Shown here: positions 4,411 through 28,056 of the stretch, one piece after another
Layout: each line of letters opens with the position of its first letter
How positions within the stretch are numbered: the first letter of the stretch is position 1
DNA from: Paramicrosporidium saccamoebae KSL3
Taxonomy: Eukaryota > Fungi > Cryptomycota
Assembly (NCBI GenBank): GCA_002794465.1
Contig: MTSL01000113.1
Span: 1-32,000 of the forward strand
DNA length: 32,000 nucleotides
Reading direction: 5' to 3'
Position numbers and translations under genes: made by a program
The notes under the pieces: model-generated
What the model was told of the DNA's origin: nothing
Seen by the model: the letters and a program-made list of their open reading frames with translations, nothing else
The model's database searches: none

Positions 4411-4445
4411 AGTGTTTCCAATAAAAATGCCAATTGAATTACAGC

Positions 4446-9744: not shown

Positions 9745-9748
9745 TACT

Positions 9749-9788: not shown

Positions 9789-10011
9789 GGATCCGGAAAT
9801 GGAAAAGATAAATTTGTGACTGTCTCTGTGGAAGGTTAATGGTGAATCTGAGAGTACGCAGTCCATTATTTACAAGCCCAGCACTCTAGAGTAACGGTAA
9901 TAAAATCAAGTCCATCGACAGCTTAATGGGTTCATAAAGATTTGCGCAACCACCAATCATGAGATTTCCCTACCGACCTCGGAAACGAATAATAGCATTT
10001 CGTTCCACCTC

Positions 10012-13000
10012 ATGGCTGGTGGTCGTACAAGTCTCTATGAAAGACAGTGGAATGAAGTCGATGCTATCAAGTCAATCTACATTGTAATCACTGCTATTTT
10101 TGCCAAAGTATTAGGATGAATATGAGGAAATAGCGTATCCATGGAGCGTATATCATTCAAGTAGAATTCACATTCAAATAGGTCGACCATCCCCCGTGTT
10201 TTGTAATACATCTGAGCATCACTGAGACTGGAGCTCAGGGCAGCACTTGCGCAGTTGATTTAGAGTTCAAGTACCTACTGTTATTTTTCCGACAATTTAG
10301 ACTGACCCCGTCATATCCGGATACAGTTCCCGAAATCAAAATAACCAAAAAGCGTGGAATGCAGTCTTCGCAGACTCATTCGATGCAGGAGCAAATGTGC
10401 CAGAAAGCAAGGACCCTGCTCGGATCTGAAATGATATTTGATTTGGTTGAGCACGCAAAAGTATTGAATCGTCTGCTCTCTTTAACCTAGCAGGAGTTGT
10501 TGACCATGGCGACAAAGAAAAAAGTGTCCTTTCATGACGAAATGACAATGAGAAAAACTTTGAATCGCGCAACTCTGGATCAGGAGACTTTGCATGCAGA
10601 CTCATCCAAGGCAAACGTGAGTCCTGAAGCCGAGGAGCTTGGTATCACCTGGATAACTCTGCTAATCCAGTAGCAAGCCGAATCAAGCACGAATTGGAGG
10701 TAAAGGAAAAACTGGTCAAGTCGGCGCGGGATAGGAAAAATTCCGAAGATCCCAGCGATTTTAGCAAAATTCTCCACTTTGACCCTCCGCTAAGCATCCA
10801 ACTTCCCGATTCTGAAAAACCTTTAAAAATTCCCAAGCTTTTTGTGGGCGACGCGCTGGTAGAATCGGTGCTAGGGGGAAACACTTTTTGCGCAGAGTTT
10901 GATGGACTAGAGTTTCTAGCAACATCGATCCGATTTGAGGGCGCCTTTTATCACACCACCCACGGAAGGAAGAAATTACACGCCGTCGGTAAGAAGATTC
11001 AGGAACTTTCCCATCTGGGATACAGCCCACTGTATTGTCGTCTGTTGGGGTCCACGCTGGTCGAGGTGGGTGAGAAAATGTCCGACTTGTGGATTGTGAC
11101 AGATAATTATTCTGGAATGACCATGGAGTGGTTGTTAAACTGCAGTGGAACATTCAGTCTGAGCAAGTCCATGTCGTATGTAGAGGATATTTTGCATTCA
11201 TTATCTGATTTGCACTCGAGCAATGTTGCCCATCAAGGTACATGGCACGATGACGAGCTTCTAATGTCTGTAGATTTGCTACTTTCAAACATTATCATCT
11301 CAACTGGAATTGCTGGGTTGAGGCTGATTCATCCTGCAATCACACGCCTACTTAGAGATTTGCATCAGACACATCCAATTTCTGGTCGTTTTACCTTGCC
11401 CAGTGAGATTTCGTGGCGACCACCAGAGGTAATTTCCAAAGGCGGTCAATCTGGCAAAAAGGCAGATATTTGGCATCTTGGCCACGTGTTCCTCCAAATG
11501 CTCTTTGGAATCTCATTCCCTGCAGCATTTGAGACTGCCGATGATGCCTTGGAGGTGGTCAGTGGTCTTCCCGCCAGTGTTCAAAGTCTAATCAATTCCA
11601 TGCTTGAAAGGGAGACCACATGCCGGCCCTCAGTTGCCGAAATTTTGAATCACATTGCCTTTTCACCAAAATCTATGAAAGAGTATGAATCATACACCAC
11701 CAAAAACATTTCTCTCGCACCAAGGAACATTCCCGTCGACATTTCCAGTCGAAGTGATCGCCGAGAATCTTCACGATACAAGACTGATTTTGAAGAGATT
11801 CAATTTCTTGGACGAGGCGCATTTGGACAGGTCATCAAGGTTCGCAATCGCATTGACAACCGATTCTATGCCATCAAGAGGATCCGGTTGGATCCATCAA
11901 ATTTTGACTATAACAACAAGATTTTAAGAGAAGTCACCACCCTTAGTCGGCTTCACCATGACCGGGTAGTCCGGTATTATCAAGCATGGATTGAGGGGGG
12001 TTTGGCATCCCGGTCGGAAGACTTGAGGGAGACAAGTGAGTCGTCTGAGGAGGAGGAAGACGATGGGACTGATGACGAGTGGAGCAGGGAAGGCATTAGC
12101 AGCAGAAAAATGTACTCGAGTAATATGATCCAGTCCAACTCCAGCCTGTCTTCACTAATCCAATTCCACACTGGATTCACCTCGTCCGAAGCATCCAGTC
12201 AGAATGCCCTTGAAAGTACAGCCGAGACAATGTTGGCTGCTGGCAATGGGCCACAATATTTGTACATTCAAATGGAATATTGCCCTAATCAGACCCTAAG
12301 GGATGTTATTGATGCTGGTGTTGACAGCGACGAGGCCTGGCGACTATTCCGGCAGATTGCCGAAGGCCTTTGTCATGTGCATTCTCAAGGAACGATCCAT
12401 CGTGATTTAAAGCCGGGAAACATTTTTCTGGACACTAATGGGGATGTTAAAATTGGAGATTTCGGCCTTGCCGTTGGAGAAGATGGTGAGATTGTCAGCA
12501 AATCTGCGCCTGTTGAAGTTGTGGATACTGGTGAATCTTTGACAGGAGGAATTGGCACTCCTCTGTACGTTAGTCCTGAACAAGAGGCTCATGGCAGTCG
12601 CTACAATCAAAAGGTTGACATGTACAGTCTTGGTATCATTCTGATCGAGCTGTTGGTTCCTTTCACAACCGGCATGGAACGTGTTCTAGTCATAAAAGAT
12701 GTCAGGAGTGCTGCCGTAAAGCTCCCTGACATATTTAGCAGACCCAATATGACAAAAGCTGCATCAATTTTGAAGAATCTGCTGGGACACGATGCCAAGA
12801 CTCGATTCACGTCAGAGGAGCTTCTTCGGAGTGACTTGCTTCCCGTCAAGATGGAAGATGAGTACATTCGCGAGGCTATCAGAACCGTGTCATCTCCAAA
12901 TACCCCGTACTACAGTAAACTATTGACGACAGTCTTTTCCCAGGGATATGATCCGCTCAAAGCGTTCACATTTGATTACCACGCGGGAATTACGAATGAT

Positions 13001-14701
13001 GCAGCCATCCTGTCTGGCTTGGACAAGGTGGAATCCATCTTGACGACCGTGTTCAGTAGACATGGTGCGGTTCGCTTCGAACCTCCGCTACTCGTCCCCA
13101 AAGGAAGTACGGCGGGACCCACGTTTCTGTCATCTTCGGGACAGCTCGTGCAGCTTTCTGACAATCTCACCACACCATTTGCAAGGTTTGTGGCTCTAAA
13201 CTCCATCGCCGATATGAAGCGGTTTACGATTGGTCCAGTGTTTCGAGAAAACTTGGCGGGAGGGCAGCCTCGCCAGCCTCTGGAGGCTTCATTTGATCGC
13301 GTCTACTCCAGTGAGGATAACCTAATACCCGAGTTGGAGGTGATTCGAGTAGCTAGCACAGTGTTGGATGAAGTGGTGGGCTCCCAATCCTTTGTTTTAC
13401 GGTTGAATCACGCCGATATTTTGTCAGCTGTACTTACGCAGTGTCTTGTGCCCGCCAACAAAAAGAAGGACGTGATGGAGGTTTTGTCTCAATTCAGCAA
13501 ATCCAGCTGGATTAAAGTAAAAAGTCTGCTCACTTCACGCGTGGTCCTGCCTCCCGCCGCGATTGATAGTCTTGGTAAAATTGTTGGGATCAAAGGTAAT
13601 TGTGCAAGTGAGGTTGGTAGTAAATATCTAGATTTGGAGCCTCTTGTTGCTGTCAAGAGATTGGGAGACATTTTAAAGAGTATGAAAGAGTCTGCAGAAG
13701 CCATTAGGTACATTAATTTACTAGTGGCATGCATTCCCCAAATTGGTATCAAATATCGCATATCAGTCGATCCGCTGTTCAATCTCAATGATGTCATTTA
13801 TTCTGGGACCATGTTTCAGGTCATAATGGAGGATCGAAAAAAGACGGACGGACTGGTGTCTGGAGGTTCGTTTAGGAAACTTGTCGACAGCTTCAGGTTT
13901 CCCACAGACCGTGTTCGCAACATTAACGCAGTGGGGGCGGTCTGGAATCTCGGTCGACTTTTGAATATGAGGTCGTCTCTCGGGATACGAATCGGAAAGG
14001 AGCCTATTGTTCTCATCTACTCGGCTGGTCCGGATATGCTGCTTGAGAAGCTGAACATTGCATCGCTACTATGGGATTCCGGCATAGTTGTGGATATTAT
14101 CCGGGAAGACATTGTGACCGGCGAGTATATCAATCAGATTGTTCGGATAAGGGGAATCTCTGCCACCATTCACTTGAAGGATCATTCTTCCCGAGGACAA
14201 TTTGGTGTTGTCAGGTTAAAGAGCATTGAGAAAAGGCAAGAATTTGAGTTGACCCGATCGGAGATTGTCGACGCGCTTTGCTCAATTTTTGCCGAAACCG
14301 ACAGGGAAGTGTCTCGAGATGAGCAAGGTATGACCCCACAGCCATCCTCGACGCCCCTCAATGTGTCGCTGTTTGCGCCATATGCCAAGATTAAGGGAGG
14401 CCAGAAGACTATTATTATGGAAAAGGCTGTCCGCGCCATGTCTCCCTTGCTGGCCACCATGTCTGGGACTGCGCCCATTGAAGTAATTGCTCATGACATG
14501 TCTCGGGACCTGTTGCGGCGTGTAATGGACACTCTTTCTGAGGGCGATGATTCATTCAAGAAGCTGGTGGATTCGCGCGACGATCGCAATGCAGCCACGA
14601 AAATGAGGACGCTGCTTAGAGGACTCCGTGAAAAGTCGTTTGCCTTCCTTTATCATTACAAGGATAATTGCATCGACCTGGCGCCGTTGACAATTCAATA
14701 A
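10012..14701 (+). CDS. GCN2: eIF2-alpha kinase GCN2 (RWD, pseudokinase, kinase, HisRS-like, CTD), multi-exon
   Basis: Hand-spliced exons 10012-10083, 10115-10147, 10182-10270, 10301-10460, 10491-10641 and 10671 onward give an RWD domain (RQWNEVDAIKSIYIDEY...VDLEFKLTPSYPDTVPEI...GSEMIFDLVEH) in frame with the long ORF. Kinase motifs are LGRGAFGQV, YAIKRI, LYIQMEYC, HRDLKPGNIF, KIGDFGLA and GTPLYVSPE. The HisRS-like part includes VFSRHGA and PFARFVA. Confidence 0.95.
10084..10670 (+). other. Five spliceosomal micro-introns in the GCN2 5' region: 10084-10114 (31 nt), 10148-10181 (34), 10271-10300 (30), 10461-10490 (30), 10642-10670 (29)
   Basis: All begin GTA and end TAG or CAG. Removing them yields a continuous frame matching the RWD domain. 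GCTAAT in intron 5 looks like a branch point. Confidence 0.85.
11238..11273 (+). other. Probable in-frame, stop-free 36-nt intron hidden inside the GCN2 ORF
   Basis: GTACAT...CTAAT...TAG. Removal converts VAHQGTWHDDELLMSVDLLLSNIII into VAHQDLLLSNIII, a subdomain VIb-like HxD...NI motif. Confidence 0.7.
13596..13631 (+). other. Possible in-frame, stop-free 36-nt intron in the GCN2 HisRS-like region
   Basis: GTAATT...CTAG, phase 1, same size class as the other introns. No protein motif confirms it. Confidence 0.35.
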
Positions 14702-14755: not shown

Positions 14756-15325
14756 ATGAAGGAGGTGAGATTCAAGAGACGTATGATGAAGCAATTTCTC
14801 CTGGATGCGACAATCTGTGCATTCCAAGAACGCCGAGCAACACTTCCCAGACCAAACACAATTCGTGTTGAAGAGGACGCTCTTAACTTTGACGACAATA
14901 GCAATATGGAAAATTCCTTGCTCGAGAGTCCCTCTATATCGCTGAAAGGAATATTTGCCCATTTCAAAAAGACGAGTGCAGTCACCATAAAGCACAAGAA
15001 ACCGACGTACGAGTGTGTTCCATTCTCTGATGGCAAGATCTTTGATTCCCAAAGCTACAAAGATTGTCCCCGATCCATAATGGAGCCCCCTGACGAGAGA
15101 GATAAGAGGGGTAAGGAGGATGAGAGAGATGGAAGAGATGAGAGAGATGGGAAAGATGGGAAAGATGAGAGAGATGGGAAAGATGACCATGTTCAGTCGT
15201 TCAGGTGTCAGCCAGACGCGCCTGTCAAGTCGTCCAGGCGTTGCCCTGATGACCAGTCCATGTCTTCATTGCAAGATGCCTTGAGTATATCAATGGGCAT
15301 TGAAATTGATAGTTTTGAAGGGTAA
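14756..15325 (+). CDS. Orphan hydrophilic protein, 189 aa, with D(E/G)(R/K) repeats
   Basis: ATG-to-TAA ORF filling the gap between GCN2 and Doa10. I recognise no domain. Confidence 0.5.
   Translation: MKEVRFKRRMMKQFLLDATICAFQERRATLPRPNTIRVEEDALNFDDNSNMENSLLESPSISLKGIFAHFKKTSAVTIKHKKPTYECVPFSDGKIFDSQSYKDCPRSIMEPPDERDKRGKEDERDGRDERDGKDGKDERDGKDDHVQSFRCQPDAPVKSSRRCPDDQSMSSLQDALSISMGIEIDSFEG
15092..15190 (+). repeat. Eleven degenerate 9-nt units (GATGAGAGA/GATGGGAAA) encoding DER/DGK
   Basis: Direct reading of the 9-nt periodicity. Confidence 0.85.
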
Positions 15326-15607
15326 TCTAGTTTTTGTGGTAACATTTTGGTAGGAGTGACTTTTATGACTAGCCGTTATAGTCTGCGTGAGAAGCAAGAG
15401 AGCGTATGTTTGTGCTTGGGCAATACTATCATGTCGACGGAACAGAGACAAAGTGCGCGATAGTGCATAATCTCATCCAATATCGTACCATATTATCTCC
15501 TCTAGTATCGTGTCGCGTCATTCCATTTAGTACCGTCTCATAGTATGGCTTAGCATCTCTGCAAGCCGGGATATTGATGCGTTTGACAGTTCCTATTTCG
15601 GTCAGCA

Positions 15608-15616
15608 GCCAATCAG
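15608..15616 (+). promoter_or_regulatory. CCAAT box (AGCCAATCAG context) 10 nt upstream of the Doa10 ATG; related CCAATCA boxes at 3569-3575, 4679-4685 (reverse) and 9953-9959
   Basis: Matches the NF-Y/HAP consensus and recurs within 60 nt of four start codons. Confidence 0.5.
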
Positions 15617-15625
15617 GCGGACCTC

Positions 15626-18600
15626 ATGGTCGCTGATACTGCGCATGACCATAGCGCTCCCGGTACGCAGTCCTATTTTCCGTCTGACTTGGCGGTAGAA
15701 ATATGTCGCGTCTGTCGTGGAGAGGCCACAAATGATCAGCCTCTATTCTATCCTTGTCTATGCTCTGGTAGCATCAAGTACGTCCACCAAGAGTGCCTGC
15801 TGGAATGGCTGAAACATTCCAAGAAAAAGTATTGTGAGCTATGTAAGCACCCATATTCGTTCAGTCCAGTTTACGAAGAACTCATGCCCGCTCGTCTGCC
15901 CATAAGTGTTATCAGTCTAGGACTGGCACGGCAATTTTTTGGAATCCTTCGAATCGGCCTACGCTATGTATATCTTTCTGCCATTTGGCTTGTCCTCGTG
16001 CCCACCATTACCACTTCAACACTCTGTCTTTATCTGGGATGGGGAATGGTGGGACTCAAAGAATTAAGCCTTGTCACTGCCATCTTTAATGTGGGAGTCG
16101 GCCTAGGAATTACGTCAGTAATGGTGTTACTTTTGATGAGCTTATTATTACTGAGAGACTATATGTTGACACATCGACTGTTGCGTGTTCGGAGACGAAG
16201 ACGTGCCAACGGTATGGGTATGGGAGTGGGTGTCGGTGCGGGTGCGGGTGTAGATGTGGGGATAAATGAAGGGGGTAATGGGGAGATGAATAGAGATGCG
16301 AATAGAGAGGCGAATGGAGAGGTGAATAGAGAGGCGAATAGAGAGGCAAATGGACAAGAACCTGGAGATGCAAATAGAAGGGAAAACGAAAGAGAACTTG
16401 CAGATGAAGCTACAGGCATTGATGAAAATTCAGCCATCGGAATTCATCGCAACAACAATCCAACCATGGGAATCTATCGCAATAATGATCCAACCACGGA
16501 AATCTATCGCAACAAGAATCAAACCGCAGGAATCCGCCGCAACGACAACCTACCCACGGGAATCCACAGCAGCGATAATCCAACCGCAGAAATCCACAAC
16601 AGCGTTAATCTGACCGCAGAAACCCACAACAGCGATAATCCAACCACAGAAATTCACAACAATACCCGTCCAGCCACAGGAATCTACCGCAATGGAAATC
16701 CCATCGCAGAAATTTATCGCAGTGAAAACTCAGTTACAGAAATTCATCACAATGGTAATTCAGAGACAACGGCGAGGACCTTTGTGACTCGACAATCTGA
16801 GAGGTCATATTGGCTACAAAATGTCGTTCCTCGTGAATATCGAGCATATCTCCGACGTCGCGACCTTTACCGCGAGAGAAATCTTCGAGGGAGCCATTCT
16901 CATCTTGATGCGGACACTAGCGCGCTAACCTCCAGACCACAAGCGGTCGAGAATGCTGCCGTCGCTAGCTCTTCAATCACAAATTCAAATGTAGAAGAGG
17001 GTGGAACTTTTCATCGCAGGAACAATGGACTAAGAGAGCACAATCGGGGAGAAACGTCCCACATAGCCGGGTCAAGCACATTGAATGTCACGTTCCGTGA
17101 TAATATTCGCTGCAAGATTTGCTCTAGTGTAGTCTGTATCGACAAGGAACATGTTGTTTTGGCATCTCAGAGGACCCGACAGCAAGAAGCTACAAGCGGA
17201 GCCGAGCCAGAGGAAGGCCAAGGCACCACAACTGATCCGCTCCCTGTGGCACCCGTTGCTGACATCCCTCCTCCCCCTCGACGGGTAGAGGATGCTGCGG
17301 TAGAGGCTAATCAGTGGAATTTCTTGGGAATGAACTTTGAGGGTGATAACGGGGCAGCCATGACATTGTCCGAGTTTATTGGGCTGACCGGCTCACTTCT
17401 GTCTGTAATCCAGAATGCCTTTGTCATTATTTCTTGCAATGTCATGGTTCTTCACTCTGCAGTTTTCGTTCCCCAAATGGTCGGGAAAGCCGTCCTCAAA
17501 GGCGAACTGCCGCTTTGGCTATCCAATGGAATTTCATTTATCGAATCCACAATTTTCAATGTCGCCACTTCCGAATCAGATGTGACAAAAGTATATCCCT
17601 TGGCCAAGAACGCATTGGCAGCTATTGTATCGCATGGCAAGCCAGCTATTACATCTCTATCGATGATTCCAGACTATCTGATAACTCTACTGCCAAACAA
17701 CTTTCAAGGATTGCTATCGGAACGACTTGCAACAATTGGAACTAATGCTAGACTCGCAACGACTTTATTTTCGTACTCGGAGGGGTATTATATGGATTTC
17801 ATCTTGCAGCTCTTTGCCGGGTACTTGGCAATTCTCTGCACTTGTGGTGTATACCGGCTGCTTGTGATTGATAATATGCGCAAATTGGATGACTTGCATC
17901 GCGGCCTTTTGCAAATGTTTCAGCTTTTTTCGTCATATTTGAAACTTGTTTTTTTCATGATGATTGAACTGATTGCTTTTCCAATTTACTGCGGGTGGAT
18001 GGTGGACCTTTCGTCACTAAACATGTTTGCATCAAACTTTGCCGGGAGAATTGGGTTCTACAACAGTTATCCATTTTCATCGCAGCTGATCCACTGGTCG
18101 GTGGGCACAATCTTTCTTATTCAGGTATCGGTGATGATCAAGTGGTATCGAAGCGTGTTTCGGCCAGGCCTGCTCTACTTTATTCGAAATTCGGATGATC
18201 CGGATAATTTGCCCTTGAAAGAGGTAGTGGAACGATCCGTCCACGACCAGCTATTGAGATTTGTCAACTCTTTGATTCTCTTTGGGATAGTCATTGTCTG
18301 CCACATTTATGGCTTTTCGGTCATGTGCCAGTTGTTTGTCCCCAATCTAATTCCCCTGAACATTAGTTTCCGTAACTACACTGCCGAGGTGCCGTATGAC
18401 TTGTTTGGAAACCTCTTTGCCAAAGTCTTGGTAGATTTTCTCAATCCTGGTACGATTGGAAAATTGTCGCGGGCATTTATGCGATCCGTTCTGAAGCTTC
18501 TCAGACTCAGTTCTTACTTTTATGGAGGCCGATATCTTTATGAAGAGTCGCTTACTACAGGAAAATGGGTGTTTGTTCCAGATGCTGAACGGGTGTACAA

Positions 18601-19633
18601 GGCTGAAAAGGTCCGGGACATGTTTCAAAGGCGGGTTGAGCCTCTTGATATCGCCAAGATTCCAGTTGTTGAAGGTCGCGATCCGTCCACTGTACCAATT
18701 GCCCCGACTGTCCCGGTTGAGCCCAGACGGCCAAGAAGAGTGGGCGCGGGCCGACGTGCTGAAGACCCAACCAAGGGATTCACCGTGGTATATCGACCAA
18801 ACAATTGTGCTGCCCGAGTATACTTGTTCTTATTTACCGAATGGCTCTACTATCAACTGGTGGGAATGCTTCTTGTCGCTACGCCCATTCTAATTGGACG
18901 CTACATCTTTGGCCTCTTCTTGACTGATGGTACCAAGGCACATGAGATGCACACTTTTATGGCAGGATTCATGGTCATGGGGGTGTTGATGAAGACGGTT
19001 CAGCTGACATACAATGTCCTATGCGATGGGGGCTTGGTAAATGTCCTCAAAACTAGCATAAGAGTGCCAGTTATTGCTCTCAAAGCGGCCATTGTGGGGG
19101 TCTTTATTTCATTCCTCTGGCCCACAATGATTGGGGCTTACTTGATGCTCATCTTGTCACCTTTGCTCTCATCGGTGAATGAGACACCCATTTTACCGCT
19201 CTTTACGTGCTGGTTCATTGGATTCATGTATATCAAGGTCTTTTACACTGTGCGCGACGTTCTTTGTTCGACTGAAAGAGTCCAGATTCTTGATCGACTC
19301 GCTACATTAGAGGGATGGACAGATATGCAATTTATGCAGGTCATGCTCCGTGTTGTTCTGCCATACACCATGCGTCTCGTAACGCTCATCGTCGGTCCTC
19401 CATTGGCCGTTGTCCTGCTGGCGCCGCTGATTGACCTCGATTTTGTCCAAATGTTGATTATCGGCAGATGGTCCTACCTGTTGAGCCTGGCTGTGCCTGC
19501 AGTTGTTCTGGGGGTGGGTTTGATATCCAATCTTCGACAAAGTATGGCCATGCGCATTAGAGATGACAACTATCTCGTCGGCCGACGGCTCCATAATCTC
19601 GAGAGGCCCCCAAGCCAGCCTCGATTCCCGTAA
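15626..19633 (+). CDS. DOA10: ERAD E3 ubiquitin ligase Doa10/Ssm4/MARCH6, with a large low-complexity insertion
   Basis: N-terminal RING-CH (CRVC...PCLCSGSIKYVHQECLLEW...CELC), EFIGLTGSL, the TD region (IELIAFPIYCGWMVD, HWSVG, FRPGLLYFIR), many TM helices and a C-terminal IRDDNYLVGRRLHN. Confidence 0.95.
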   Translation: MVADTAHDHSAPGTQSYFPSDLAVEICRVCRGEATNDQPLFYPCLCSGSIKYVHQECLLEWLKHSKKKYCELCKHPYSFSPVYEELMPARLPISVISLGLARQFFGILRIGLRYVYLSAIWLVLVPTITTSTLCLYLGWGMVGLKELSLVTAIFNVGVGLGITSVMVLLLMSLLLLRDYMLTHRLLRVRRRRRANGMGMGVGVGAGAGVDVGINEGGNGEMNRDANREANGEVNREANREANGQEPGDANRRENERELADEATGIDENSAIGIHRNNNPTMGIYRNNDPTTEIYRNKNQTAGIRRNDNLPTGIHSSDNPTAEIHNSVNLTAETHNSDNPTTEIHNNTRPATGIYRNGNPIAEIYRSENSVTEIHHNGNSETTARTFVTRQSERSYWLQNVVPREYRAYLRRRDLYRERNLRGSHSHLDADTSALTSRPQAVENAAVASSSITNSNVEEGGTFHRRNNGLREHNRGETSHIAGSSTLNVTFRDNIRCKICSSVVCIDKEHVVLASQRTRQQEATSGAEPEEGQGTTTDPLPVAPVADIPPPPRRVEDAAVEANQWNFLGMNFEGDNGAAMTLSEFIGLTGSLLSVIQNAFVIISCNVMVLHSAVFVPQMVGKAVLKGELPLWLSNGISFIESTIFNVATSESDVTKVYPLAKNALAAIVSHGKPAITSLSMIPDYLITLLPNNFQGLLSERLATIGTNARLATTLFSYSEGYYMDFILQLFAGYLAILCTCGVYRLLVIDNMRKLDDLHRGLLQMFQLFSSYLKLVFFMMIELIAFPIYCGWMVDLSSLNMFASNFAGRIGFYNSYPFSSQLIHWSVGTIFLIQVSVMIKWYRSVFRPGLLYFIRNSDDPDNLPLKEVVERSVHDQLLRFVNSLILFGIVIVCHIYGFSVMCQLFVPNLIPLNISFRNYTAEVPYDLFGNLFAKVLVDFLNPGTIGKLSRAFMRSVLKLLRLSSYFYGGRYLYEESLTTGKWVFVPDAERVYKAEKVRDMFQRRVEPLDIAKIPVVEGRDPSTVPIAPTVPVEPRRPRRVGAGRRAEDPTKGFTVVYRPNNCAARVYLFLFTEWLYYQLVGMLLVATPILIGRYIFGLFLTDGTKAHEMHTFMAGFMVMGVLMKTVQLTYNVLCDGGLVNVLKTSIRVPVIALKAAIVGVFISFLWPTMIGAYLMLILSPLLSSVNETPILPLFTCWFIGFMYIKVFYTVRDVLCSTERVQILDRLATLEGWTDMQFMQVMLRVVLPYTMRLVTLIVGPPLAVVLLAPLIDLDFVQMLIIGRWSYLLSLAVPAVVLGVGLISNLRQSMAMRIRDDNYLVGRRLHNLERPPSQPRFP
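16277..16360 (+). repeat. Seven 12-nt units (AATAGAGAGGCG consensus, NREA)
   Basis: Direct reading within the Doa10 insertion. Confidence 0.85.
16439..16768 (+). repeat. Eleven 30-nt coding units, consensus (G/E)I(H/Y)(R/N)(N/S)xNPTx
   Basis: Units start every 30 nt from 16439 to 16739. Confidence 0.9.
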
Positions 19634-19921: not shown

Positions 19922-19927
19922 ATATAT

Positions 19928-20138
19928 TGTTGCGTAGTGGGGATAGAACCACGGGCCCTGCCAGGCGGGAAGAGAGGAGATGGGACGAGAAGAGAATTTA
20001 TTCAGTCAACCCAACGACCCATTTATAGTCTCCCAAGTGGCATGGCAATAGTCTTCAAATACCCAGCAACTAGGTCTTCTCCAAACTAGGGGACTATCCT
20101 CAAAACCCAACTAATCAACCCTCTATCTCTACGTCACA
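19928..20138 (-). mobile_element. Solo LTR-like element, copy 1 (211 bp)
   Basis: Plus-strand ends TGTTGCGTA...TACGTCACA; flanks ATAT/ATAG (3 of 4 match). Homologous to 25372-25544 and 27649-27860. On the minus strand, TATAAA is followed by AATAAA. Confidence 0.75.
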
Positions 20139-20189
20139 ATAGCATAACTTGGCCAGGGATCATAATCCACTACCCAACACCGCAGGTCC

Positions 20190-20786
20190 ATGAATGGGGC
20201 CTTGACAAAGACATTGGCCACAAGAAAGCTTTCACTATTTATTCTCACTAGTCTTGACGGAAAAGTTGCGCGAAGTAATGGTGAGATTGACTGGATTTGG
20301 ACAGACCCAGTGGAGGGACCCAACAGCGACTGCAACTATGGCAAATTCATGTCCAGTGTTAAATATGTTGTCACGGGACGCAAAACGTTTGACATTTCGG
20401 CATCGTTTGAAAAGCTTCCATTTGCAGGGAAGCAAAAGTATGTCTTTACGCGGACGGCAGGCTCATCTCGCCCAAACGACGAGACGACCTATATCAGCGA
20501 CGATCCGGCACAGTTTGTTCGCGAGCTCAAAACAAGGGCACCTCTTGATAATGTGGAAGATGAGAAAATTTGGCTTCTGGGAGGAGCAGAAATATTCAAG
20601 CAACTGCATGATGCGGACTTGGTGGACGAAATCATTCTTACCATCCAGCCCATTATAATTGGCGCCGGGATAAACCTGTTTGACGGAATCACTCTAGAGA
20701 CCAAATGGAATCTCGTCTCTTGCGAGAGCTGGAAAGAGGGACTAGTTCAAATGACATATTCCCGTAGCCCAACTCCCACTGTATAA
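20190..20786 (+). CDS. Bacterial-type dihydrofolate reductase family (RibD C-terminal domain) protein, 198 aa
   Basis: RKLSLFILTSLDGKVAR.NGEIDW, VVTGRKTF, IWLLGGAEIF and DLVDEIILTIQPIIIGAGINLF match stand-alone RibD_C/DHFR-fold proteins. Intronless. Confidence 0.88.
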   Translation: MNGALTKTLATRKLSLFILTSLDGKVARSNGEIDWIWTDPVEGPNSDCNYGKFMSSVKYVVTGRKTFDISASFEKLPFAGKQKYVFTRTAGSSRPNDETTYISDDPAQFVRELKTRAPLDNVEDEKIWLLGGAEIFKQLHDADLVDEIILTIQPIIIGAGINLFDGITLETKWNLVSCESWKEGLVQMTYSRSPTPTV

Positions 20787-20895
20787 TAAAACACCGAAAC
20801 CTCTTCCATAATGAGCATAGCGACAGGGGATTCCGACTGTCAAATTTGTTCAGTCACCTGCGACAGGATTGTTTAGTGACCACTTTTAGATTTGG

Positions 20896-23364
20896 ATGGA
20901 CCTCGCAAACAGAGTCGATCGAGCTAGACAGTGGGAATCTGTCATTGCAAGTGTCGAGTCGACACCTCTAGAGCCCGGCAATTGGTGGTTCCTGATTAGT
21001 GCTGGTTGGTTGCGTAGCTGGCAATCCTACTGCCAAGACTTGACTGGTGCGGCTCCACCTCCTGGGGGAATCACGACAGACAACCTCATCCATCCGCTGT
21101 CAAGCAAACTGGGATTTGCCCAGACTCGGGATGGTCTGGTTGTGGACGAGGACTATGTTGTTGTGCCAGAGGAAGCTTGGAATCTATTGACATCTTGGTA
21201 TGGGTTATCAGAGGGATCACTTGCAATTTCTCGTCCTGTTGCTGTCAATGGCGAAAGTGCCTTTATTGATGTAAATCTCCCAAGTGTCAAATTTCGCATC
21301 GGAAATGGCACAATGAGAAGGCTTTGTTTTCCCCGAGGCTACACGGTCGGTCAGCTGAAACGGATATTTATTACTAAGGAAGAAGCGGAAAAGAGGGAGG
21401 AAAGGCTGATGTTTGGTGAGGAAAATAATGAAATTTGTGTCACGTCGTTTACTGGAGAGGAGGACATTTCTGTCACGTCTTTTACTGGAGATGAGGACAT
21501 TTCGGGTGCGCCGTTTAATAGCAAGGACAAAATCGAACAGAGCCCCTTATTTACCGTCTATTACAATGAGGGACGCAAATCTCTTGACAATGATGCAGTG
21601 CTAGTTAGTGATACTCATTTGCTCAACTCGGATGCCTATCTCGTTGTTGATGCGGCGCCGGAAATGTTGCAGTGTGATGCAGAAGACGTGAAGCAATCAT
21701 TGATAAAATTAAATGACACATCTGGTCTTTCTGGACTACGAAATTTGGGAAATACATGTTTCATGAATTCCGCGCTTCAATGTCTGTCTAATTGCGAGCC
21801 TCTGACAAGTTTTTTTTTGCATGGTCATCACGTGTCGCAGATCAACCGATCAAATCCAATAGGCACCGGCGGGGCACTGGCTGAAGCCTATGGAGCATTG
21901 GTGAAGGACATTTGGCAGGGTAATGGATGCTGTGGCAATGTGGCTGATCCGAGCCGATTCAAGCACATTCTTGGTCGTTTTGAACATCGCTTTATGGGCT
22001 ACCATCAACAAGACTCGCAGGAACTATTGTCTGCACTTCTTGACAGACTTCACGAGGATGTTAATAGAATTGTCCACAAGCCCTACATTGAGCTACAAGA
22101 CTCTGACGGTAGACCAGACTGTGAGATTGCCAAAGAGTCTTGGACAAACCACAAACTCAGAAATGACTCTGTAGTTGTGGACAATTTCCATGGACAATTC
22201 CGATCAAGTGTAGTGTGTCCAAACTGTGGCTATAATTCTGTCACTTTTGACCCATTTTTATTTGTCAGCCTCCCACTTCCAAATGCAAGCCTCTCCACAC
22301 TCGAGGTTACCTTTGTACGCCATGACCATGCCATCCAGATGCGTATTCCGGTAGACCGAGTTCACGCAAAAATTGACAATCTCCTCGACTCTATTGGGGA
22401 GGCTACGGGGATTTCCGTGTCCCAATTGGTACCGGTGGAAATTTATGATCATAGTCCTTACAAAGTCTACCGGAAGGACTATCCGTTGAGTAGAATCAAT
22501 CAGCCTTCAGACGACATTAAAGTGTATGTTGCCGAATCGGATTTTCCAGTTTGGATTACATTTAAACTGGAGGCTGGCGGTGGATATACACTGCCAGTAG
22601 CATTCCCCCTGCTACTCTCCATGGAGAAAGATGAGGAAATTGTTCCAGCGATTCGCTCACTAGTCGCTGGTATTATCAAGACGGCTCTGCCTAACATTGA
22701 TCTTTCTACTATTGACTGGGACAAGCTTGCTCGCATAGATGAGGATCGGAGCCTGGGCATTGACTGCCTGTATTCTGGATACATCGTCGTGTTCTCCCGC
22801 ACTTACTGCAGGGACGAGCTTGGAGTTGACCTCGGCACTGTATTTGAGAATCTTGAGCCAGAGGTTGGTCCTCCAGTAAGCCAACCAAAAGCCGTGTCCT
22901 TGCAGGACTGTCTTGACCTTTTTACCATGGAAGAGCGTCTATCTGCAGACGAGTTGTGGTATTGCAAGCGATGCAAGGACCATCAGCAGGCTTCGAAAAA
23001 GATGGATCTCTGGCGTCTTCCCAATGTGCTCGTCATTCATCTAAAGCGTTTTTCTTACAGCAGGCTATGGGGAGAAAAGGTTTCGACGCGTGTGGACTAT
23101 CCCATAAACGGGCTCGATTTGAGATCCAACCTCCCTTCAGGCGAGCACCCCGTGTACGATCTGTTTGCAGTTTCCAATCACCACGGAGGGCTTGGAGGAG
23201 GCCATTACACGGCCTTGGCCAAAAACTTTGTCAACGGACAATGGTTCAACTTTGACGATTCATACGTGAGCAAAGTTGACGCCTCCACCCTGCAGAGCAA
23301 GGACACTCAGCGCTCCGCCTACTTGCTCTTTTATATTCGACGAGACGACACGAATAATAGATAG
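20896..23364 (+). CDS. UBP12: Ubiquitin-specific protease, Ubp12/USP4/11/15 type (DUSP + USP)
   Basis: DUSP (WWFLISAGW...DYVVVPEEAWNLLTSWYG), Cys box GLRNLGNTCFMNSALQCL, QQDSQE, CPNC/CKRC Zn ribbon, and His box YDLFAVSNHHGGLGGGHYTA...WFNFDDS. Confidence 0.93.
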   Translation: MDLANRVDRARQWESVIASVESTPLEPGNWWFLISAGWLRSWQSYCQDLTGAAPPPGGITTDNLIHPLSSKLGFAQTRDGLVVDEDYVVVPEEAWNLLTSWYGLSEGSLAISRPVAVNGESAFIDVNLPSVKFRIGNGTMRRLCFPRGYTVGQLKRIFITKEEAEKREERLMFGEENNEICVTSFTGEEDISVTSFTGDEDISGAPFNSKDKIEQSPLFTVYYNEGRKSLDNDAVLVSDTHLLNSDAYLVVDAAPEMLQCDAEDVKQSLIKLNDTSGLSGLRNLGNTCFMNSALQCLSNCEPLTSFFLHGHHVSQINRSNPIGTGGALAEAYGALVKDIWQGNGCCGNVADPSRFKHILGRFEHRFMGYHQQDSQELLSALLDRLHEDVNRIVHKPYIELQDSDGRPDCEIAKESWTNHKLRNDSVVVDNFHGQFRSSVVCPNCGYNSVTFDPFLFVSLPLPNASLSTLEVTFVRHDHAIQMRIPVDRVHAKIDNLLDSIGEATGISVSQLVPVEIYDHSPYKVYRKDYPLSRINQPSDDIKVYVAESDFPVWITFKLEAGGGYTLPVAFPLLLSMEKDEEIVPAIRSLVAGIIKTALPNIDLSTIDWDKLARIDEDRSLGIDCLYSGYIVVFSRTYCRDELGVDLGTVFENLEPEVGPPVSQPKAVSLQDCLDLFTMEERLSADELWYCKRCKDHQQASKKMDLWRLPNVLVIHLKRFSYSRLWGEKVSTRVDYPINGLDLRSNLPSGEHPVYDLFAVSNHHGGLGGGHYTALAKNFVNGQWFNFDDSYVSKVDASTLQSKDTQRSAYLLFYIRRDDTNNR
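21438..21503 (+). repeat. Tandem duplication of 33 nt (VTSFTG(E/D)EDIS x2), 2 mismatches
   Basis: 21438-21470 versus 21471-21503. Confidence 0.9.
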
Positions 23365-23570
23365 ATGATTTGTAAATTGCCAATGTGGGTGCTGGCGTTT
23401 AATTGGGGGAATGACTGATCGGTCAAATAGAAAAGAGGAGATAAACAGATTTGATTTGATTTGCTTTATATTAATCTGTTGTACCCCCATACCCACGACA
23501 GTGCTTTTATAATCAAATTGCTAGACCATTTGGTGCGGATGATAATAAATAGACGCTTTATTCTCGGGTA

Positions 23571-24423
23571 CTATTTGGGACGACGGTAGACAAATTGTGA
23601 AGTCTTTAGCAAGCTCCACTTATAACGCTTCCAATACCAAGACAAGCCAACGAGCGAGGCGGTCAGCAGTAGCCCTTTTAAACCTAGCAGCTTCCGTTCC
23701 TCCATCTCGGGCTCTGCTGCCCAGCTGAGAAAGGTTGTGACATCCTTTGCCATTTGAGAGGTGGTTGCAGGAGTACCATCGTCATACTCTACGATGCCAT
23801 CATAAAGATTCCTGGCCATGGCAATTGCTCCTCCTGGGAAGTACTTGTTGTAGTGCAAATTTCCTCGCATCTCTATACCCTCAGGAGGATCACAGTAGCC
23901 GGTGATTAGTGAAAAGACATAGTTTTGTCCGTCAGGGCGGGCCTTTGTCATGAGTGTCAGGTCTGGGGGCAAGGCGCCGGCATTTGCTGCTCTCGCGGCT
24001 TCCTCGTTTGGGTATGGATTTGGAAACCTGTCAGTGAGCTTTCCAGGTCGAGTGAACATGGCGCCAGTGTCATCTGGGCCGTCTTCAACCTCTATTTCAG
24101 CGGCCTCTGCCTTGGCTTCCGCCAGAGTGTGCGAAACTCCGACGAGGTTTCGATACGCCAATTTGAGAGAGTGGCAGGCGGCACATACTTCTTTGTAAAC
24201 CTGATACCCGCGACGGATGCTAACAGTGAGAATAGGCTGCAATGTGGGCCTACCTGGCATGGTCGTATGAGGACATTAGTCCCGAATGCGACCAAGGATA
24301 CTTTGGAGGCTCCACATTCTCCTCTGCCAGCACACGAGTTGGGAAGCGACAGAGGAAATCAAAACTCGTGAATCCGGCTACAGCGCCAGAAGCAATGCCG
24401 ACCAAATGAGCAACTTGACGCAT
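23571..24423 (-). CDS. CYT1: Cytochrome c1 (complex III), two exons: 24423-24254 and 24219-23571, 272 aa
   Basis: A 34-nt intron at 24253-24220 (GTAGGC...TTAG) joins [10 protein letters not shown]...SYDHAS to [16 protein letters not shown]. Also NAGALPPDL, the FPGGAIAM distal Met and a C-terminal TM. The track ORF starting at 24260 reads through the intron. Confidence 0.95.
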
Positions 24424-24506
24424 TGTCCGACCAATAGGAGTGCAATGGTGGTGGGTGTTATGGAGTGGTAGATTGGGCTGAATTTTGCTCTTGAAGAGAT
24501 GGTGGG

Positions 24507-24940
24507 ATGGATCCTTTAGTCAAGTCTGTGGCATTGGTAGTACTCGAAAAATTGGTTGGTATTATCCAATTATTACGCTGGATTCGGGGTGACCGATGGC
24601 AAGTGTTACGTGGTGATACGACCCACATACAGGAACTTGCCTGTGGTCCCCTTGTTACCATTGAGATGGCCAACGAGACAGCTACGATGGGGATACATTG
24701 CCGCTCCAGATTGGCTCATTAGGAAAGACCGATGGGCATTTCCATTGAAAAAGTTTATTGAACAGAGATTGCTGAATCAAAGAGATATAGAATTATTGTA
24801 ATGGGTGTTCCGCAATGGACCCAAAAGACTCTCAGACTCGAACGTCCTGGCTACGGAAATTGGGATTTACCAAAGAATCTCAAGTATGTTAATACTGTAA
24901 CAGCACAAAATAAAGGGGCCATTTGAATTACTGCAATTGG
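24507..24940 (+). pseudogene. Decayed paralogue of the ankyrin-like (A..G.L..L.W) repeat family
   Basis: Frame-hopping repeats: VGIIQLLRWI; MANETATMG|YIAAPDWL (a +1 shift in GGGG 24689-24692); RDIELL*WVFRNG (TAA 24799-24801 where Q/E/K is expected); KGPFELLQL. These resemble GHLQIFQWLYNQG and AAAEAGHTNILDWV of the 25660 gene. Confidence 0.55.
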
Positions 24941-25234
24941 AAATGTGCGGAGGTAATGGGGAAGGCGTGTAAAGGGATTGCTTAATAAAATTCGAGTCTG
25001 ATCTAAAGTTAGAGATGGAATTTTGATCAAAGTCGAGGGCTCTTTATGTATTTACCGTAGGCGCTGAAAAATCGTTAGGGTCAGCTCTTCAACTGCGCCC
25101 GCCAGCTATCAGCACATTTGGTAGGCTTTGTATTTGCTGTCGTTTTTCCCAACCCGCCGATCACAGTGTAGCGTCATCTGTTTACTTGGACGTAAGTGGT
25201 TAAAAGGCTGTGTCTTTTAACTTGTATTTAACAG

Positions 25235-25321
25235 TGTGGGGTTCAAGTAAAGACCTTGTTGAAGAGCAAACTTATTTTTATAAAAGTATGCGGCATATAG
25301 GCAGCCATCCTCAACGTGACA
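25235..25321 (+). repeat. Short LTR-like remnant of the second family (TGTGGGG...TATAAAAG...CGTGACA)
   Basis: The 5' 21 nt are similar to the reverse complement of 19901-19921. TGT...ACA ends, no TSD. Confidence 0.3.
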
Positions 25322-25371
25322 GAAATGGCTTGTGGGATCACTATCTGGGTCGGACTCATCAATGATAAGTG

Positions 25372-25544
25372 TGTGACGCAGAGGCAGAGGGTTGATTAGC
25401 TGGGTATTTTTGTGCTATAGTGGATCGCTTTGCTGGGTATTTGAGGACAATGAGACGTGTATCCATACTATTATAGGATTAGCAGTGAACAAACCCCTCT
25501 TTCTCGCCTGACAGTCCATACTATTTATCCCCCACTACGCGACA
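25372..25544 (+). mobile_element. Solo LTR-like element, copy 2 (173 bp)
   Basis: TGTGACG...CGCGACA, flanked by a perfect 4-bp duplication AGTG (25368-25371 and 25545-25548). The first 34 nt match the copy 1 reverse complement at 30/34. The last 44 nt match the copy 3 reverse complement with a single indel. Confidence 0.8.
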
Positions 25545-25659
25545 AGTGTATGATGCTTAACAGGCCCTTTATTCGAGTCTTTGGTCCATAGTTATGCTAT
25601 CTCACAACTGGGGATCACTTTAGAAACAGTAAATTACTAAAAGTGGCACAGCCACACCA

Positions 25660-27630
25660 ATGGTGTATTATACGGCAATTCCGTTACTATTACTCTTATT
25701 TCGAGGAACTCACTCCGCTGTGGCTAGTTCTAGTAGCGACAGCGATGACTTTGCCCTCCCTGCATCGGTTGAAGCTAATGTCCCCATAAATTTCGACACC
25801 TTGATTAAAGCTGGGGGAGACTTGGACTTTACCACACTCGAATCCCAACTTCAGGGTGGTGACCCAGAATCCATCTCTAAGCAGTGTCAGTCAATATCTA
25901 TCATAGTGGCCAAATTCTGTATGCTCAAAAATACCGAAAATGTCGTACAGCAGGCACTCGATGCGGGCTGCTACAAGGCTCTGCAGTGTTTTATGTGCCA
26001 GGCAATTTGGAAGAATCAAGAGCGAGAACATTGGGTTTGGGCCAAGATTTATGGCACTCCCGCTTTTGATCAAGAATCTTGGAATCGGCGAAAATTCCAA
26101 TGGGAAAAATTCTGGAAGATGATAATCAAGGCCGATAATAGAAAGTTCTACTTGCTTACGAGCAGTGCGCCATGTTTAAAGGTCTTTTCTGATGAAGATT
26201 TATACAAAGCTATTATCGAATTTGATGCGGTCAACATCCTCTCCTCTCTCGGTGCAGAGGCGGTGAGAAAGTTGGCAGGAAAGGTAGATTTGATAATCGA
26301 ATACATGCCGCCTAGAGTAATTGCCTGGATCATCGGCAGCGTTCACGAAATTAAAGCTAATACCAGACATCTCATCCCTCAAATGGTCAAGTCTTCCAAA
26401 GCACTCCAGTATCTCCTCCATGTTGGCTACGACCAGATTCCAAGGCCCTGCCTGTATATTAAGAATGATCTGCCGGCTGTCTACAGCAATTATGCATATT
26501 GGCTTGCCAAGCGAAATTGTCTGTCCTTACTGCAGGAAATGCTCAAGGAAAATCCCAATTTTAATCGCAACTATGCTTGGTTTCGAAAGTCCGCCATCAA
26601 GGGAGGCAGTCTCGACGTTCTAGAGTGGCTGTACAAGATGAAGAAAATCAAGCTTGTACCCGCAGAATTGGTGTGTCTTGTTGTCAAAAAGGGAGATTTA
26701 AAGACCATCAAATGGATAATCGAAAAGTTTGGACATTGTATTAATTGGGATCACGTGTTACGGCAGTCTTATTCATCTTGTCGTTCGCGTAAAACTATCA
26801 GATATATACAGAAAAACACTAGTGCCATTTTGCCCGACCATTATATCCCAAGTTTCCTCGCAGCAAAAGGTAATCTTCCCGAATTACAGGCTACAATTGC
26901 AAGCTCAAGGAGCACTTTCTCGTGGAAGAAGGTAGCCAATGCCGCAGCTGAAGCTGGCCATACCAATATTCTCGACTGGGTCTACCAAACATCATGTACT
27001 CTTCCGAGCTCAAAAGCCGTGGAACAAGCTTGTAAGATGGGTCATCATACTGTCCTCATTTGGATATTCAAGGTTGATTCCTCTCAGATAAACTTTGATG
27101 GCTCATATCGCAAAATTGGTGCAGCGTATTGCCTTCTCTACGCCGCCATGAACAACAATCAGGAAGATATGGAATGGATATTAGAGAACCTCTTTAAGAC
27201 TAACCTGCCAAGCATGGATAAAGTTTATCGAGAAACCAAAGTCGTCCCTGAAGAGGCACAATTAAGAGCTCTCAAATGGATCGCATTAAAGGGTGCCACA
27301 GAGATCCAACCAGAGATGATGACAAGGGCGGCCAGTTTGGGCCATTTACAAATTTTCCAATGGCTGTATAATCAAGGACAGCCCGTAACTATTAATGCTG
27401 TGGAAGTGGCTGCTATGGATTGCAACGTAAATATTTTGGCCACCATATACGAAATTGATCAATCTTTGGTGTGCACTGTAAGAGTGGCTAACCTGGCAGC
27501 GATGCGCCGTTTTTGTTTACAAAGATATACCGTCTTAGATTGGCTGTGGAGGGTGTGTAACGTCCTCCCTACAAAATGGGATTTCGATGAAAAATGCCTT
27601 GAAGAGTGGATAATAAGCAAGCGATTGTGA
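25660..27630 (+). CDS. Putative secreted protein with about 9-10 degenerate ankyrin-like repeats (AAxxGHLxILxW type), 656 aa
   Basis: Signal-peptide-like MVYYTAIPLLLLLFRGTHS. Repeats include SAIKGGSLDVLEWL, VVKKGDLKTIKWI, AAAEAGHTNILDWV, ACKMGHHTVLIWI and AASLGHLQIFQWL. Confidence 0.85.
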   Translation: MVYYTAIPLLLLLFRGTHSAVASSSSDSDDFALPASVEANVPINFDTLIKAGGDLDFTTLESQLQGGDPESISKQCQSISIIVAKFCMLKNTENVVQQALDAGCYKALQCFMCQAIWKNQEREHWVWAKIYGTPAFDQESWNRRKFQWEKFWKMIIKADNRKFYLLTSSAPCLKVFSDEDLYKAIIEFDAVNILSSLGAEAVRKLAGKVDLIIEYMPPRVIAWIIGSVHEIKANTRHLIPQMVKSSKALQYLLHVGYDQIPRPCLYIKNDLPAVYSNYAYWLAKRNCLSLLQEMLKENPNFNRNYAWFRKSAIKGGSLDVLEWLYKMKKIKLVPAELVCLVVKKGDLKTIKWIIEKFGHCINWDHVLRQSYSSCRSRKTIRYIQKNTSAILPDHYIPSFLAAKGNLPELQATIASSRSTFSWKKVANAAAEAGHTNILDWVYQTSCTLPSSKAVEQACKMGHHTVLIWIFKVDSSQINFDGSYRKIGAAYCLLYAAMNNNQEDMEWILENLFKTNLPSMDKVYRETKVVPEEAQLRALKWIALKGATEIQPEMMTRAASLGHLQIFQWLYNQGQPVTINAVEVAAMDCNVNILATIYEIDQSLVCTVRVANLAAMRRFCLQRYTVLDWLWRVCNVLPTKWDFDEKCLEEWIISKRL

Positions 27631-27648
27631 GAGCGGACTGAACAATGG

Positions 27649-27860
27649 TGTCGCGTAGTGGGGGTAAATAGTATGGACTGTCAGGCGAGAAGGGAACCCG
27701 TTCATTTTTAATCCAATAGCCCTTTTATAGTCTCCCAAGTGGCATAGTAATAGTCCTCAAATACCCAGTATAGTGATCCACTCAAATACCCAGCAACTAG
27801 GTCTTCTCCAAACTAGGGAACTATTTCTAAAAGACATACTAATCAGTCTTTTACGTCACA
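27649..27860 (-). mobile_element. Solo LTR-like element, copy 3 (212 bp)
   Basis: Plus-strand ends TGTCGCGTA...TACGTCACA, flanked by a perfect 4-bp duplication ATGG (27645-27648 and 27861-27864). CTATAAAAG lies on the minus strand. The central ~100 bp closely matches 20023-20097 apart from a 25-nt insertion. Confidence 0.85.
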
Positions 27861-27899
27861 ATGGGATCTGTATTAATATTATATTCTCAAGCTTGTTCA

Positions 27900-28056
27900 T
27901 GTCATTTGCAAGACTAAAAATAGACTGTCGGAATAGCGGTGAACGACCATGAATGGCAGCGAGCAGCAATTAGCGAGTTTTCTTCCCTCCTCACCTTTTT
28001 CCTTTTCGTCTCTACCCGCCTGATAAAGTCGGTGGAGTCCTTTCCACTACGTGGCA
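27900..28056 (+). mobile_element. Diverged copy 4 of the same LTR-like family
   Basis: The 3' end CTCTACCCGCCTGATAAAGTCGGTGGAGTCCTTTCCACTACGTGGCA aligns with the copy 1 minus-strand end CTCTTCCCGCCTGGCAGGGCCCGTGGTTCTATCCCCACTACGCAACA. The 5' boundary is uncertain and there is no TSD. Confidence 0.5.

Follow-up and report, generated by a model that had tools for sequence, protein, structure and literature searches.

Introduction

Solo long terminal repeats (LTRs) of Ty3/gypsy-type (Metaviridae) retrotransposons, of which the sigma elements of yeast are an example, carry TGT...ACA ends that form a short imperfect inverted repeat, target-site duplications (TSDs) of 4-5 bp without fixed sequence, in one orientation a TATA box ahead of an AATAAA, and repeated motifs of the kind found in the unique 3' region (U3), and they far outnumber the full elements. 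Retroelements usually keep the polyadenylation (poly(A)) signal at the 3' end of the transcript only. The short inverted repeat of LTRs has the consensus TGTTRNR...YNYAACA, and the motif of rGmr1 is TGTNANR...CGTNACA (PMC3601003). Termini of the TGTNR type also occur in Ginger1 and Ginger2 (Tdd) elements, which produce 4-bp duplications (5-bp for Tdd) through a gypsy-like integrase, possess terminal inverted repeats (TIRs) of 40-270 bp and target CCGG/CCGT or RTATAY (PMC2836005). Two further classes of small elements are terminal-repeat retrotransposons in miniature (TRIMs), with terminal repeats of 100-250 bp around a short core of primer-binding site (PBS) and polypurine tract (PPT), and the Tourist-like miniature transposable elements with inverted repeats (MITEs) of the PIF/Harbinger group, with 3-bp TWA duplications. 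Here we compare with these systems a family of short repeats found in 32,000 nt of Paramicrosporidium saccamoebae KSL3 (positions 1 to 32,000 of contig MTSL01000113.1, assembly GCA_002794465.1; hereafter, the window), which a preliminary description of the same DNA had interpreted as solo LTRs of a once-active retrotransposon.

P. saccamoebae is an intranuclear parasite of amoebae that belongs to the Rozellomycota, with a 7.3-Mb genome that is 76% genic, and the paper describing this genome reports just 0.53% of repeats, mainly simple ones, and leaves transposons unmentioned (PMC5701793). The terms reverse transcriptase and integrase are absent from the available part of its supplementary files, and a literature search returned no transposon survey of this organism.

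We sampled ~98 kb of P. saccamoebae DNA on six contigs (~1.3% of the genome), and the loci were reached through paralogs of the ankyrin-like and S33 proteins of the window in the same genome. Protein matches additionally led to three environmental contigs (L003, L010 and L011, from JGI metagenomes 3300042203 / 3300042205), and a further one was L012 (Logan SRR23683175). These four contigs represent a close relative of P. saccamoebae and share its gene families, together with related copies of the LTR-like repeat; the DNA identity between both organisms is 80-83% in a Harbinger-like repeat, and the protein identity in the ankyrin-like family is 40%.

A family of short repeats dispersed over six contigs

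The starting observation consisted of three homologous segments in the window (copies 1 to 3, Table 1) and a diverged fourth one ending at 28056, and all of them proved to be real and unannotated. Repeat finding, MAFFT alignment, blastn (E 1e-15 to 1e-17) and nhmmer (E 1e-39 to 1e-56) agreed on copies 1 to 3, and copy 4 was recovered at E=4e-8 by an nhmmer model from which it had been excluded. A hidden Markov model built from the copies on other contigs alone recovered copies 1 to 3 at E 1e-17 to 4e-26 and gave 0 matches in 640 kb of shuffled window. As had been claimed, no copy was detected in the first 19 kb, even at E<=1.

The search for further genomic copies proposed in the preliminary description, run on the ~98 kb, yielded 13 copies on the five other contigs. 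Including the 4 of the window, the family comprises 17 copies or fragments that add up to ~2.5 kb and account for 2.6% of the P. saccamoebae DNA sampled, and clusters of truncated and inverted fragments occur among them. The copies are built of modules that recombine between subfamilies, which are mosaics of one another with many internal deletion variants. Copy 2 represents a subfamily with a distinct middle segment, and copy 3 is a mosaic that resembles copy 2 in its first 44 nt (97.7%) and copy 1 in its 3' part (87-98%).

Related copies are present on two contigs of the relative (Table 1), and the comparison between the two organisms shows conserved termini and diverged interiors. One of these copies (L010 4721-4933) lies within a Harbinger-type open reading frame (ORF) and disrupts it, whereas three other copies of the ORF are uninterrupted. 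Two LTR-pattern scans of a metagenome contig collection gave 0 matches in a collection that we judge to be without the JGI samples, because neither L003 nor L010 was returned, although both have the second pattern; scanning two patterns against viral contigs gave no match.

Table 1. Repeat copies with their duplications and internal signals, the gene cassette on each contig with the copies counted in the DNA sampled from it, and the neighbouring genes of the window
Feature	Locus	Position	Strand	Remarks
Copy 1, 211 bp	window	19928-20138	+	orientation of the preliminary description, TGTTGCG...CGTCACA; putative transcriptional sense minus; between the Doa10/MARCH6-like stop (19633) and the RibD_C/DHFR-like ATG (20190)
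Copy 1 flanks, ATAT (left) and ATAG (right)	window	19924-19927; 20139-20142		decayed 4-bp TSD, 3/4 match
Copy 1 TATAAAT, then AATAAA 25 nt on	window	20027-20021; 20002-19997	-	U3-like promoter/poly(A) arrangement
Copy 2, 173 bp	window	25372-25544	-	plus strand reads TGTGACGC...GCGACA
Copy 2 TSD, AGTG	window	25368-25371; 25545-25548		perfect, 4 bp; CACT in element orientation
Copy 3, 212 bp	window	27649-27860	+	starts 18 bp past the ankyrin-like stop codon
Copy 3 TSD, ATGG	window	27645-27648; 27861-27864		perfect, 4 bp
Copy 3 TATAAAA, then ATTAAA	window	27729-27723; 27712-27707	-	
Copy 4, ~170 bp, 5' part	window	27887-28056	-	old, 3'-truncated; 5' end TGCCACGTAGTGG at 28056
Cassette	MTSL01000113 (window and beyond)	25660-33784		4 copies on the contig
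Cassette	MTSL01000073 (L002)	1-4857		3 copies on the contig
Cassette	MTSL01000137 (L005)	2346-10265		2 copies on the contig
Cassette	MTSL01000174 (L006)	1331-8420		4 copies on the contig
Cassette	MTSL01000039 (L007)	3920-11229		3 copies on the contig
Cassette	MTSL01000099 (L008)	1382-5972		1 copy on the contig
Related copies, relative	L010	1187-1318; 1812-2017; 4721-4933		
Related copies, relative	L003	2452-2640; 2826-2886; 6203-6267		
Doa10/MARCH6-like gene	window	14756-19633	+	stop at 19633
RibD_C/DHFR-like gene	window	20190-20786	+	ATG at 20190
UCH/DUSP ubiquitin hydrolase	window	20896-23364	+	
Cytochrome c1	window	23571-24423	-	
Ankyrin-like ORF, 656 aa	window	25660-27630	+	lineage-specific family; cassette half
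S33/alpha-beta-hydrolase giant gene, 1901 aa	window and beyond	28079 to 33784 of contig	-	

Conserved ends and 4-bp duplications

TGT and ACA are the first and last three nucleotides of all well-preserved copies, and the imperfect inverted ends initially described are present in the window copies, which in the orientation of that description read TGT(C/T)GCGTAGTGG...(A/G)CGTCACA, the family as a whole reading TGTCGCGTAGTGG...(A/G)CGTCACA. In the putative transcriptional sense the ends are TGTGACGTAG...CCACTACGCGACA, the copies of P. saccamoebae having TGTGACG...CGC(A/G)ACA and those of the relative ...CGTAACA. These sense ends fit the LTR integrase-recognition consensus and resemble the att motifs of rGmr1/Sushi-type elements, since TGTGACG conforms to TGTNANR and the CGTAACA of the relative to CGTNACA (PMC3601003). 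The TIR is imperfect and extends for 10-14 nt only, after which complementarity stops, and the copies fold no better than shuffled sequence (z -1.95 to +1.15), showing no hairpin potential.

The flanks reported for copies 1 to 3 (ATAT/ATAG, AGTG/AGTG and ATGG/ATGG) are exactly as first described. Tabulation of the TSDs, another of the checks suggested, was partly successful over the 11 two-ended copies: the 4-bp duplication is perfect in three (c2, c3 and L010b, with CACT, ATGG and ATAC, respectively) and matches at 3/4 positions in two others (c1 and L005a), CTAG/CGAG being also among the duplications seen. By our own arithmetic, with 1/256 for each copy, three perfect TSDs among 11 would arise by chance with a probability of ~1e-5. 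The duplicated sequences differ from each other, indicating that no fixed target is required. Counting the terminal A as target sequence would lengthen all three perfect TSDs to 5 bp, and ends of the form TGT...CAC with a 5-bp TSD fit these three cases; however, we rejected this as the primary reading and prefer TGT...ACA with a 4-bp TSD because older copies retain the terminal A despite having T or G in the left flank. A preference for A at position -5 of the target is possible. The family therefore reads most simply as making 4-bp duplications, whereas most fungal Ty3 and Ty1 elements make 5-bp ones.

The same termini bear on the proposal that the copies derive from a tRNA as short interspersed nuclear elements (SINEs), which was raised by the resemblance of the 5' TCGCGTAGTGG to an RNA polymerase III A box. 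This segment matches in 10/11 positions TRGCNNAGTGG, which we take to be the A-box consensus, and this is the sole point in favour of a SINE. ARAGORN and Rfam gave no tRNA or RNA family match, the copies have neither a B box nor an A-rich or simple-repeat tail, and their duplications are fixed at 4-5 bp instead of being long and variable. The 3' end is sharp and carries the conserved CGTCACA, and because of this 3' end structure the SINE proposal is effectively refuted and, in our judgement, hardly credible.

One-sided TATA and poly(A) signals

The preliminary description had also noticed in copies 1 and 3 a TATAAA followed by an A(A/T)TAAA-like signal, and both signals were found, on the minus strand (Table 1). 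Across the family, 6 of the 11 two-ended copies (c1, c3, L006c, L010b, L003c and L010f), which span diverged subfamilies and two organisms, have a sense AATAAA or ATTAAA at 60-73% of their length, and a canonical TATA box precedes the hexamer in c1, c3 and L003c. The opposite strand of the 11 two-ended copies has no poly(A) hexamer anywhere; such a hexamer appears on that strand only in two incomplete or composite copies, L005b and L010a. This layout suggests an assignment of U3, repeat (R) and unique 5' (U5) regions to the copies, and, judging from the positions of the signals, a transcript of copy 1 from its TATA box would carry AATAAA at the 3' end and not at the 5' end.

Upstream of the TATA box, a motif of 13-17 nt (AAATACCCAGC...; GCTGGGTATTTGAGGAC in sense) is repeated 1-3 times per copy, and copy 3 carries an additional copy of the AAATACCCAG motif. 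The repeated motif and the mosaic subfamilies would suit the enhancer repeats of a U3 and recombination between retroelement RNAs.

Solo LTRs as the favoured reading

We lean towards considering this family as relics of integrase-mobilised retroelement ends, most likely solo LTRs left by an LTR retrotransposon of Ty3/gypsy type (Metaviridae-like) with past activity in the Paramicrosporidium lineage. Solo LTRs are preferred over a MITE, a Ginger derivative or a SINE because of the ends, the TSDs, the one-sided TATA/AATAAA signals and the lack of hairpin folding, and the family shares with the Ty3/gypsy solo LTRs the features listed in the Introduction, the TATA and poly(A) signals in part of the copies, including the excess of solo copies over full elements. 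Of the original interpretation, the mobile-element part stands, given the six contigs, the presence in a relative and the perfect TSDs, and the solo-LTR part is the best reading but falls short of proof. In contrast to the yeast sigma elements, the copies show no targeting of tRNA genes, and the window is devoid of tRNA genes.

The history that we propose would start with an element bearing two LTRs of ~200 bp, inserted by a DDE integrase that would recognise the imperfect inverted ends and whose staggered cut would generate the 4-bp duplication (5-bp counting the terminal A). Recombination between the two LTRs would then delete the body, leaving one LTR between the original duplications. In a genome so compact, insertions would survive only in short spacers, and chiefly in the fast-evolving contig-end regions that hold a cassette of S33-hydrolase and ankyrin-like genes, with which some old copies would later have been duplicated.

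Several observations weigh against this reading. The hunt for full-length elements that had been proposed was unsuccessful, as paired LTRs, gag/pol, PBS and PPT were not found in the ~98 kb, no protein search aimed at pol having been made, a difference from Ty3/gypsy families that constitutes weak evidence because of the small part of the genome examined. A six-frame Pfam search of ~11 kb (L007 1-3920 plus ~7 kb of unannotated copy-adjacent spacers) found no domain at E<=0.1. The copies, at 106-226 bp, are at the short end of LTR sizes and shorter than most fungal LTRs, the TSD is not recognisable in 6 of the 11 complete copies, which are older or clustered and would have decayed, and the subfamily of copy 2 (c2, L005a and L006a) is without a canonical poly(A) hexamer. 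Finally, the relative contains at three places a 62-bp unit with TGTGAG...CTCACA ends, whose appearance is closer to a miniature element than to an LTR, suggesting that miniature derivatives may exist.

Three arrangements were tried as complete elements and rejected. The direct pair L002 6961-7186 / 8513-8655 encloses an ordinary membrane-protein gene, copies 1 and 3 of the window also enclose ordinary genes, and a repeat shared by the ends of contigs L006 and L008, considered as an element interior, corresponds to the 3' part of a unit of PIF/Harbinger type.

Some of these points would suit a non-autonomous, MITE-like cut-and-paste element whose TGT...ACA ends would serve as recognition sites for a DDE transposase of integrase-like kind (of Ginger/Tdd type or undescribed) encoded elsewhere in the genome. 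The 10-14 nt inverted repeat, the small size with many deletion variants, the 62-bp unit, the missing retrotransposon body and the TGTNR ends and 4-bp duplications shared with Ginger elements (PMC2836005) speak for it. However, the copies have no hairpin potential, and their strand-specific TATA/AATAAA layout, conserved in position, would be without a role in a MITE. The sole trace of a transposase belongs to PIF/Harbinger (DDE_Tnp_4), with its 3-bp TWA duplications and different ends. As a Ginger-derived element, the family has the TGT start but neither the long TIRs nor the target specificity (CACT, ATGG and ATAC here), and no rve-type transposase was seen in the ~98 kb, all of which speaks against this candidate. 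Altogether we regard a MITE-like origin as rather unlikely. Tourist-like PIF/Harbinger MITEs are similarly small and located in gene spacers, and a Harbinger-type element occurs in the same regions of this genome, but the TSDs (4-5 bp here and not TWA) and the ends exclude them, and the Harbinger-like contig-end repeat ends in ...GCTCCAATATA, not ACA.

TRIMs resemble the family in the size of their terminal repeats, their proximity to genes and their absence of own coding capacity, but the sampled loci contain no direct pair around a short PBS-PPT core. The nearest to this arrangement is L010 4721-4967, where a 14-bp spacer (GTAGTATGTCCCAT) separates the copy that interrupts the Harbinger-type ORF from a second one in direct orientation, of which only the start is present before the contig ends; the two may form a tandem LTR pair or mark the border of a larger structure.

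Copies cluster around an S33-hydrolase and ankyrin-like cassette

The S33 gene of the window has four paralogs, named by NCBI 'Proteinase (secreted protein)', which are all at contig ends, and an ankyrin-like paralog adjoins the S33 paralog at every locus, forming a repeated cassette that occupies the ends of no fewer than six contigs (Table 1). With protein identities of 49-56% (S33) and 34% (ankyrin-like) between paralogs, and outside matches only in the relative from the JGI metagenomes and to ankyrin, weakly, the cassette is a lineage-specific expanded family. No telomere repeats were found at the contig ends.

It had been claimed that the repeat marks every accessory gene and sits only beside non-housekeeping genes. 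A regional enrichment around the cassette is indeed observed in this sample, which is biased because the loci were chosen through cassette paralogs: copies occupy 12 of the 21 spacers within ~8 kb of a cassette and 0 of the 10 farther away (Fisher p=0.004), and 8 of the 14 spacers touching a cassette gene versus 4 of the 17 others (Fisher p=0.075). The exclusive link was overstated, since copies also adjoin the genes of leucyl-tRNA synthetase (LeuRS; 39 bp from its stop codon), glutamine synthetase III (GSIII; L006 11905-12044, 14 bp past the stop codon), cytochrome c1 and Doa10/MARCH6, and several ankyrin-like paralogs of L002 have no adjoining copy. Window spacers with copies measure 448-1236 bp and the spacers measured without copies 54-271 bp, a difference for which the insertions largely account.

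The association with the cassette raises the question of whether the repeat is mobile or, on the contrary, a conserved promoter/terminator module or a gene flank copied with the S33/ankyrin cassette by segmental duplication. Copy 4 starts 22 bp past the S33 stop codon, and the paralogous gene in MTSL01000137 has a copy (L005 7950-8077) in the same place and orientation, 12 bp past its stop; copy 4 is therefore probably older than the gene duplication. Moreover, for three S33 paralogs the homology with other paralogs begins at a point that has a copy just upstream, and the four copies that begin 12-22 bp past a stop codon (copy 3, copy 4, L005 7950 and L006 12044) all face the same way. Against a non-mobile origin, copies adjoin unrelated genes (LeuRS, GSIII, DHFR-like and cytochrome c1) in both orientations, the young ones are sharp-ended between perfect duplications, truncated and inverted fragments form clusters, and in the relative a transposon ORF is split by a copy. 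Segmental duplication accounts for a few old copies and not for the family, and we find a non-mobile origin of the whole very unlikely.

In the four stop-adjacent copies it is the TGTCGCG end that faces the gene, so that the putative LTR sense is convergent with it; the chance of four such facings is 1/16, and the pattern is suggestive only. Upstream of genes no bias is apparent, with the putative promoter pointing at the gene in 3 of the 7 copies located within ~120 bp of a start codon. These three, copy 2 towards the ankyrin-like gene (ATG 25660), L005a towards an S33 paralog and L002B towards a membrane-protein gene, are candidates for promoter donation on the basis of their position and orientation. 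A bolder possibility, which we consider quite unlikely, is that of a miniature unit of 60-230 bp, intermediate between TRIMs and Ginger-type MITEs, which would combine integrase-recognition ends with a promoter/poly(A) module, would be mobilised in trans now or recently, would land within ~20 bp of stop or start codons and would rewire the expression of the secreted-protease/ankyrin cassette.

Read as solo LTRs, these relics are ordinary biology and change no general principle. Their concentration in the contig-end regions that hold the duplicated cassette follows a pattern known from other parasites and fungi, with clean core genes and transposon-rich variable gene families. The family helps to date the activity of the element in the Rozellomycota-Microsporidia transition and to judge how genome reduction purges retroelements, and it aids re-annotation, as several gene models near copies look wrong.

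A probable Harbinger-type element and other features of the loci

The ends of MTSL01000174 (L006 1-725) and MTSL01000099 (L008 1-787) share sequence at 89% identity, in which the C-terminal ~165 aa of an ORF containing GAPKRTRRNTQ repeats are encoded. On the L011 contig of the relative, a homologous ORF lies beside a fragment of DDE_Tnp_4, the PIF/Harbinger transposase, and the assembly is probably broken at the shared end by a DNA transposon of Harbinger type. The presence of this element at contig breaks, together with a repeat family that makes up 2.6% of the sample, indicates that the genome had at least two kinds of mobile elements.

Gene models and gene-free segments of the loci showed additional peculiarities. 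In L006 10272-14401, the deposited 1171-aa 'glutamine synthetase III' appears to fuse the ORFs 12059-14401 and 10694-11644, and an LTR-like copy (11905-12044) lies in the 414-bp gap between them together with tandemly arrayed units of ~20 bp (11671-11830, AGTCACGAGTACCAATAAAT). The ~4 kb at one end of the 11-kb contig L007 (1-3920) lack any called gene, have ORFs of at most 145 aa and gave no Pfam domain in any frame, which is unusual for a 76% genic genome.

Within the window, the 'DHFR-like' gene at 20190-20786 encodes a YyaP/RibD_C-type protein of the dihydrofolate-reductase family, with 3jtw ('Dihydrofolate reductase', E=1e-22) and 2gd9 ('Hypothetical protein yyaP') as its best solved relatives. 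In-frame short tandem repeats occur inside coding regions at 29-268, 15092-15181 and 16265-16666, with periods of 12 bp at the start of the window and of 9, 12 and 30 bp within the Doa10/MARCH6-like gene, and they give rise to low-complexity inserts (NREANGE..., NPT.EIH...). The ankyrin-like ORF is unbroken over its 656 aa, whereas the deposited model (25660-27395) contains introns and predicts 351 aa, so this model looks wrong.

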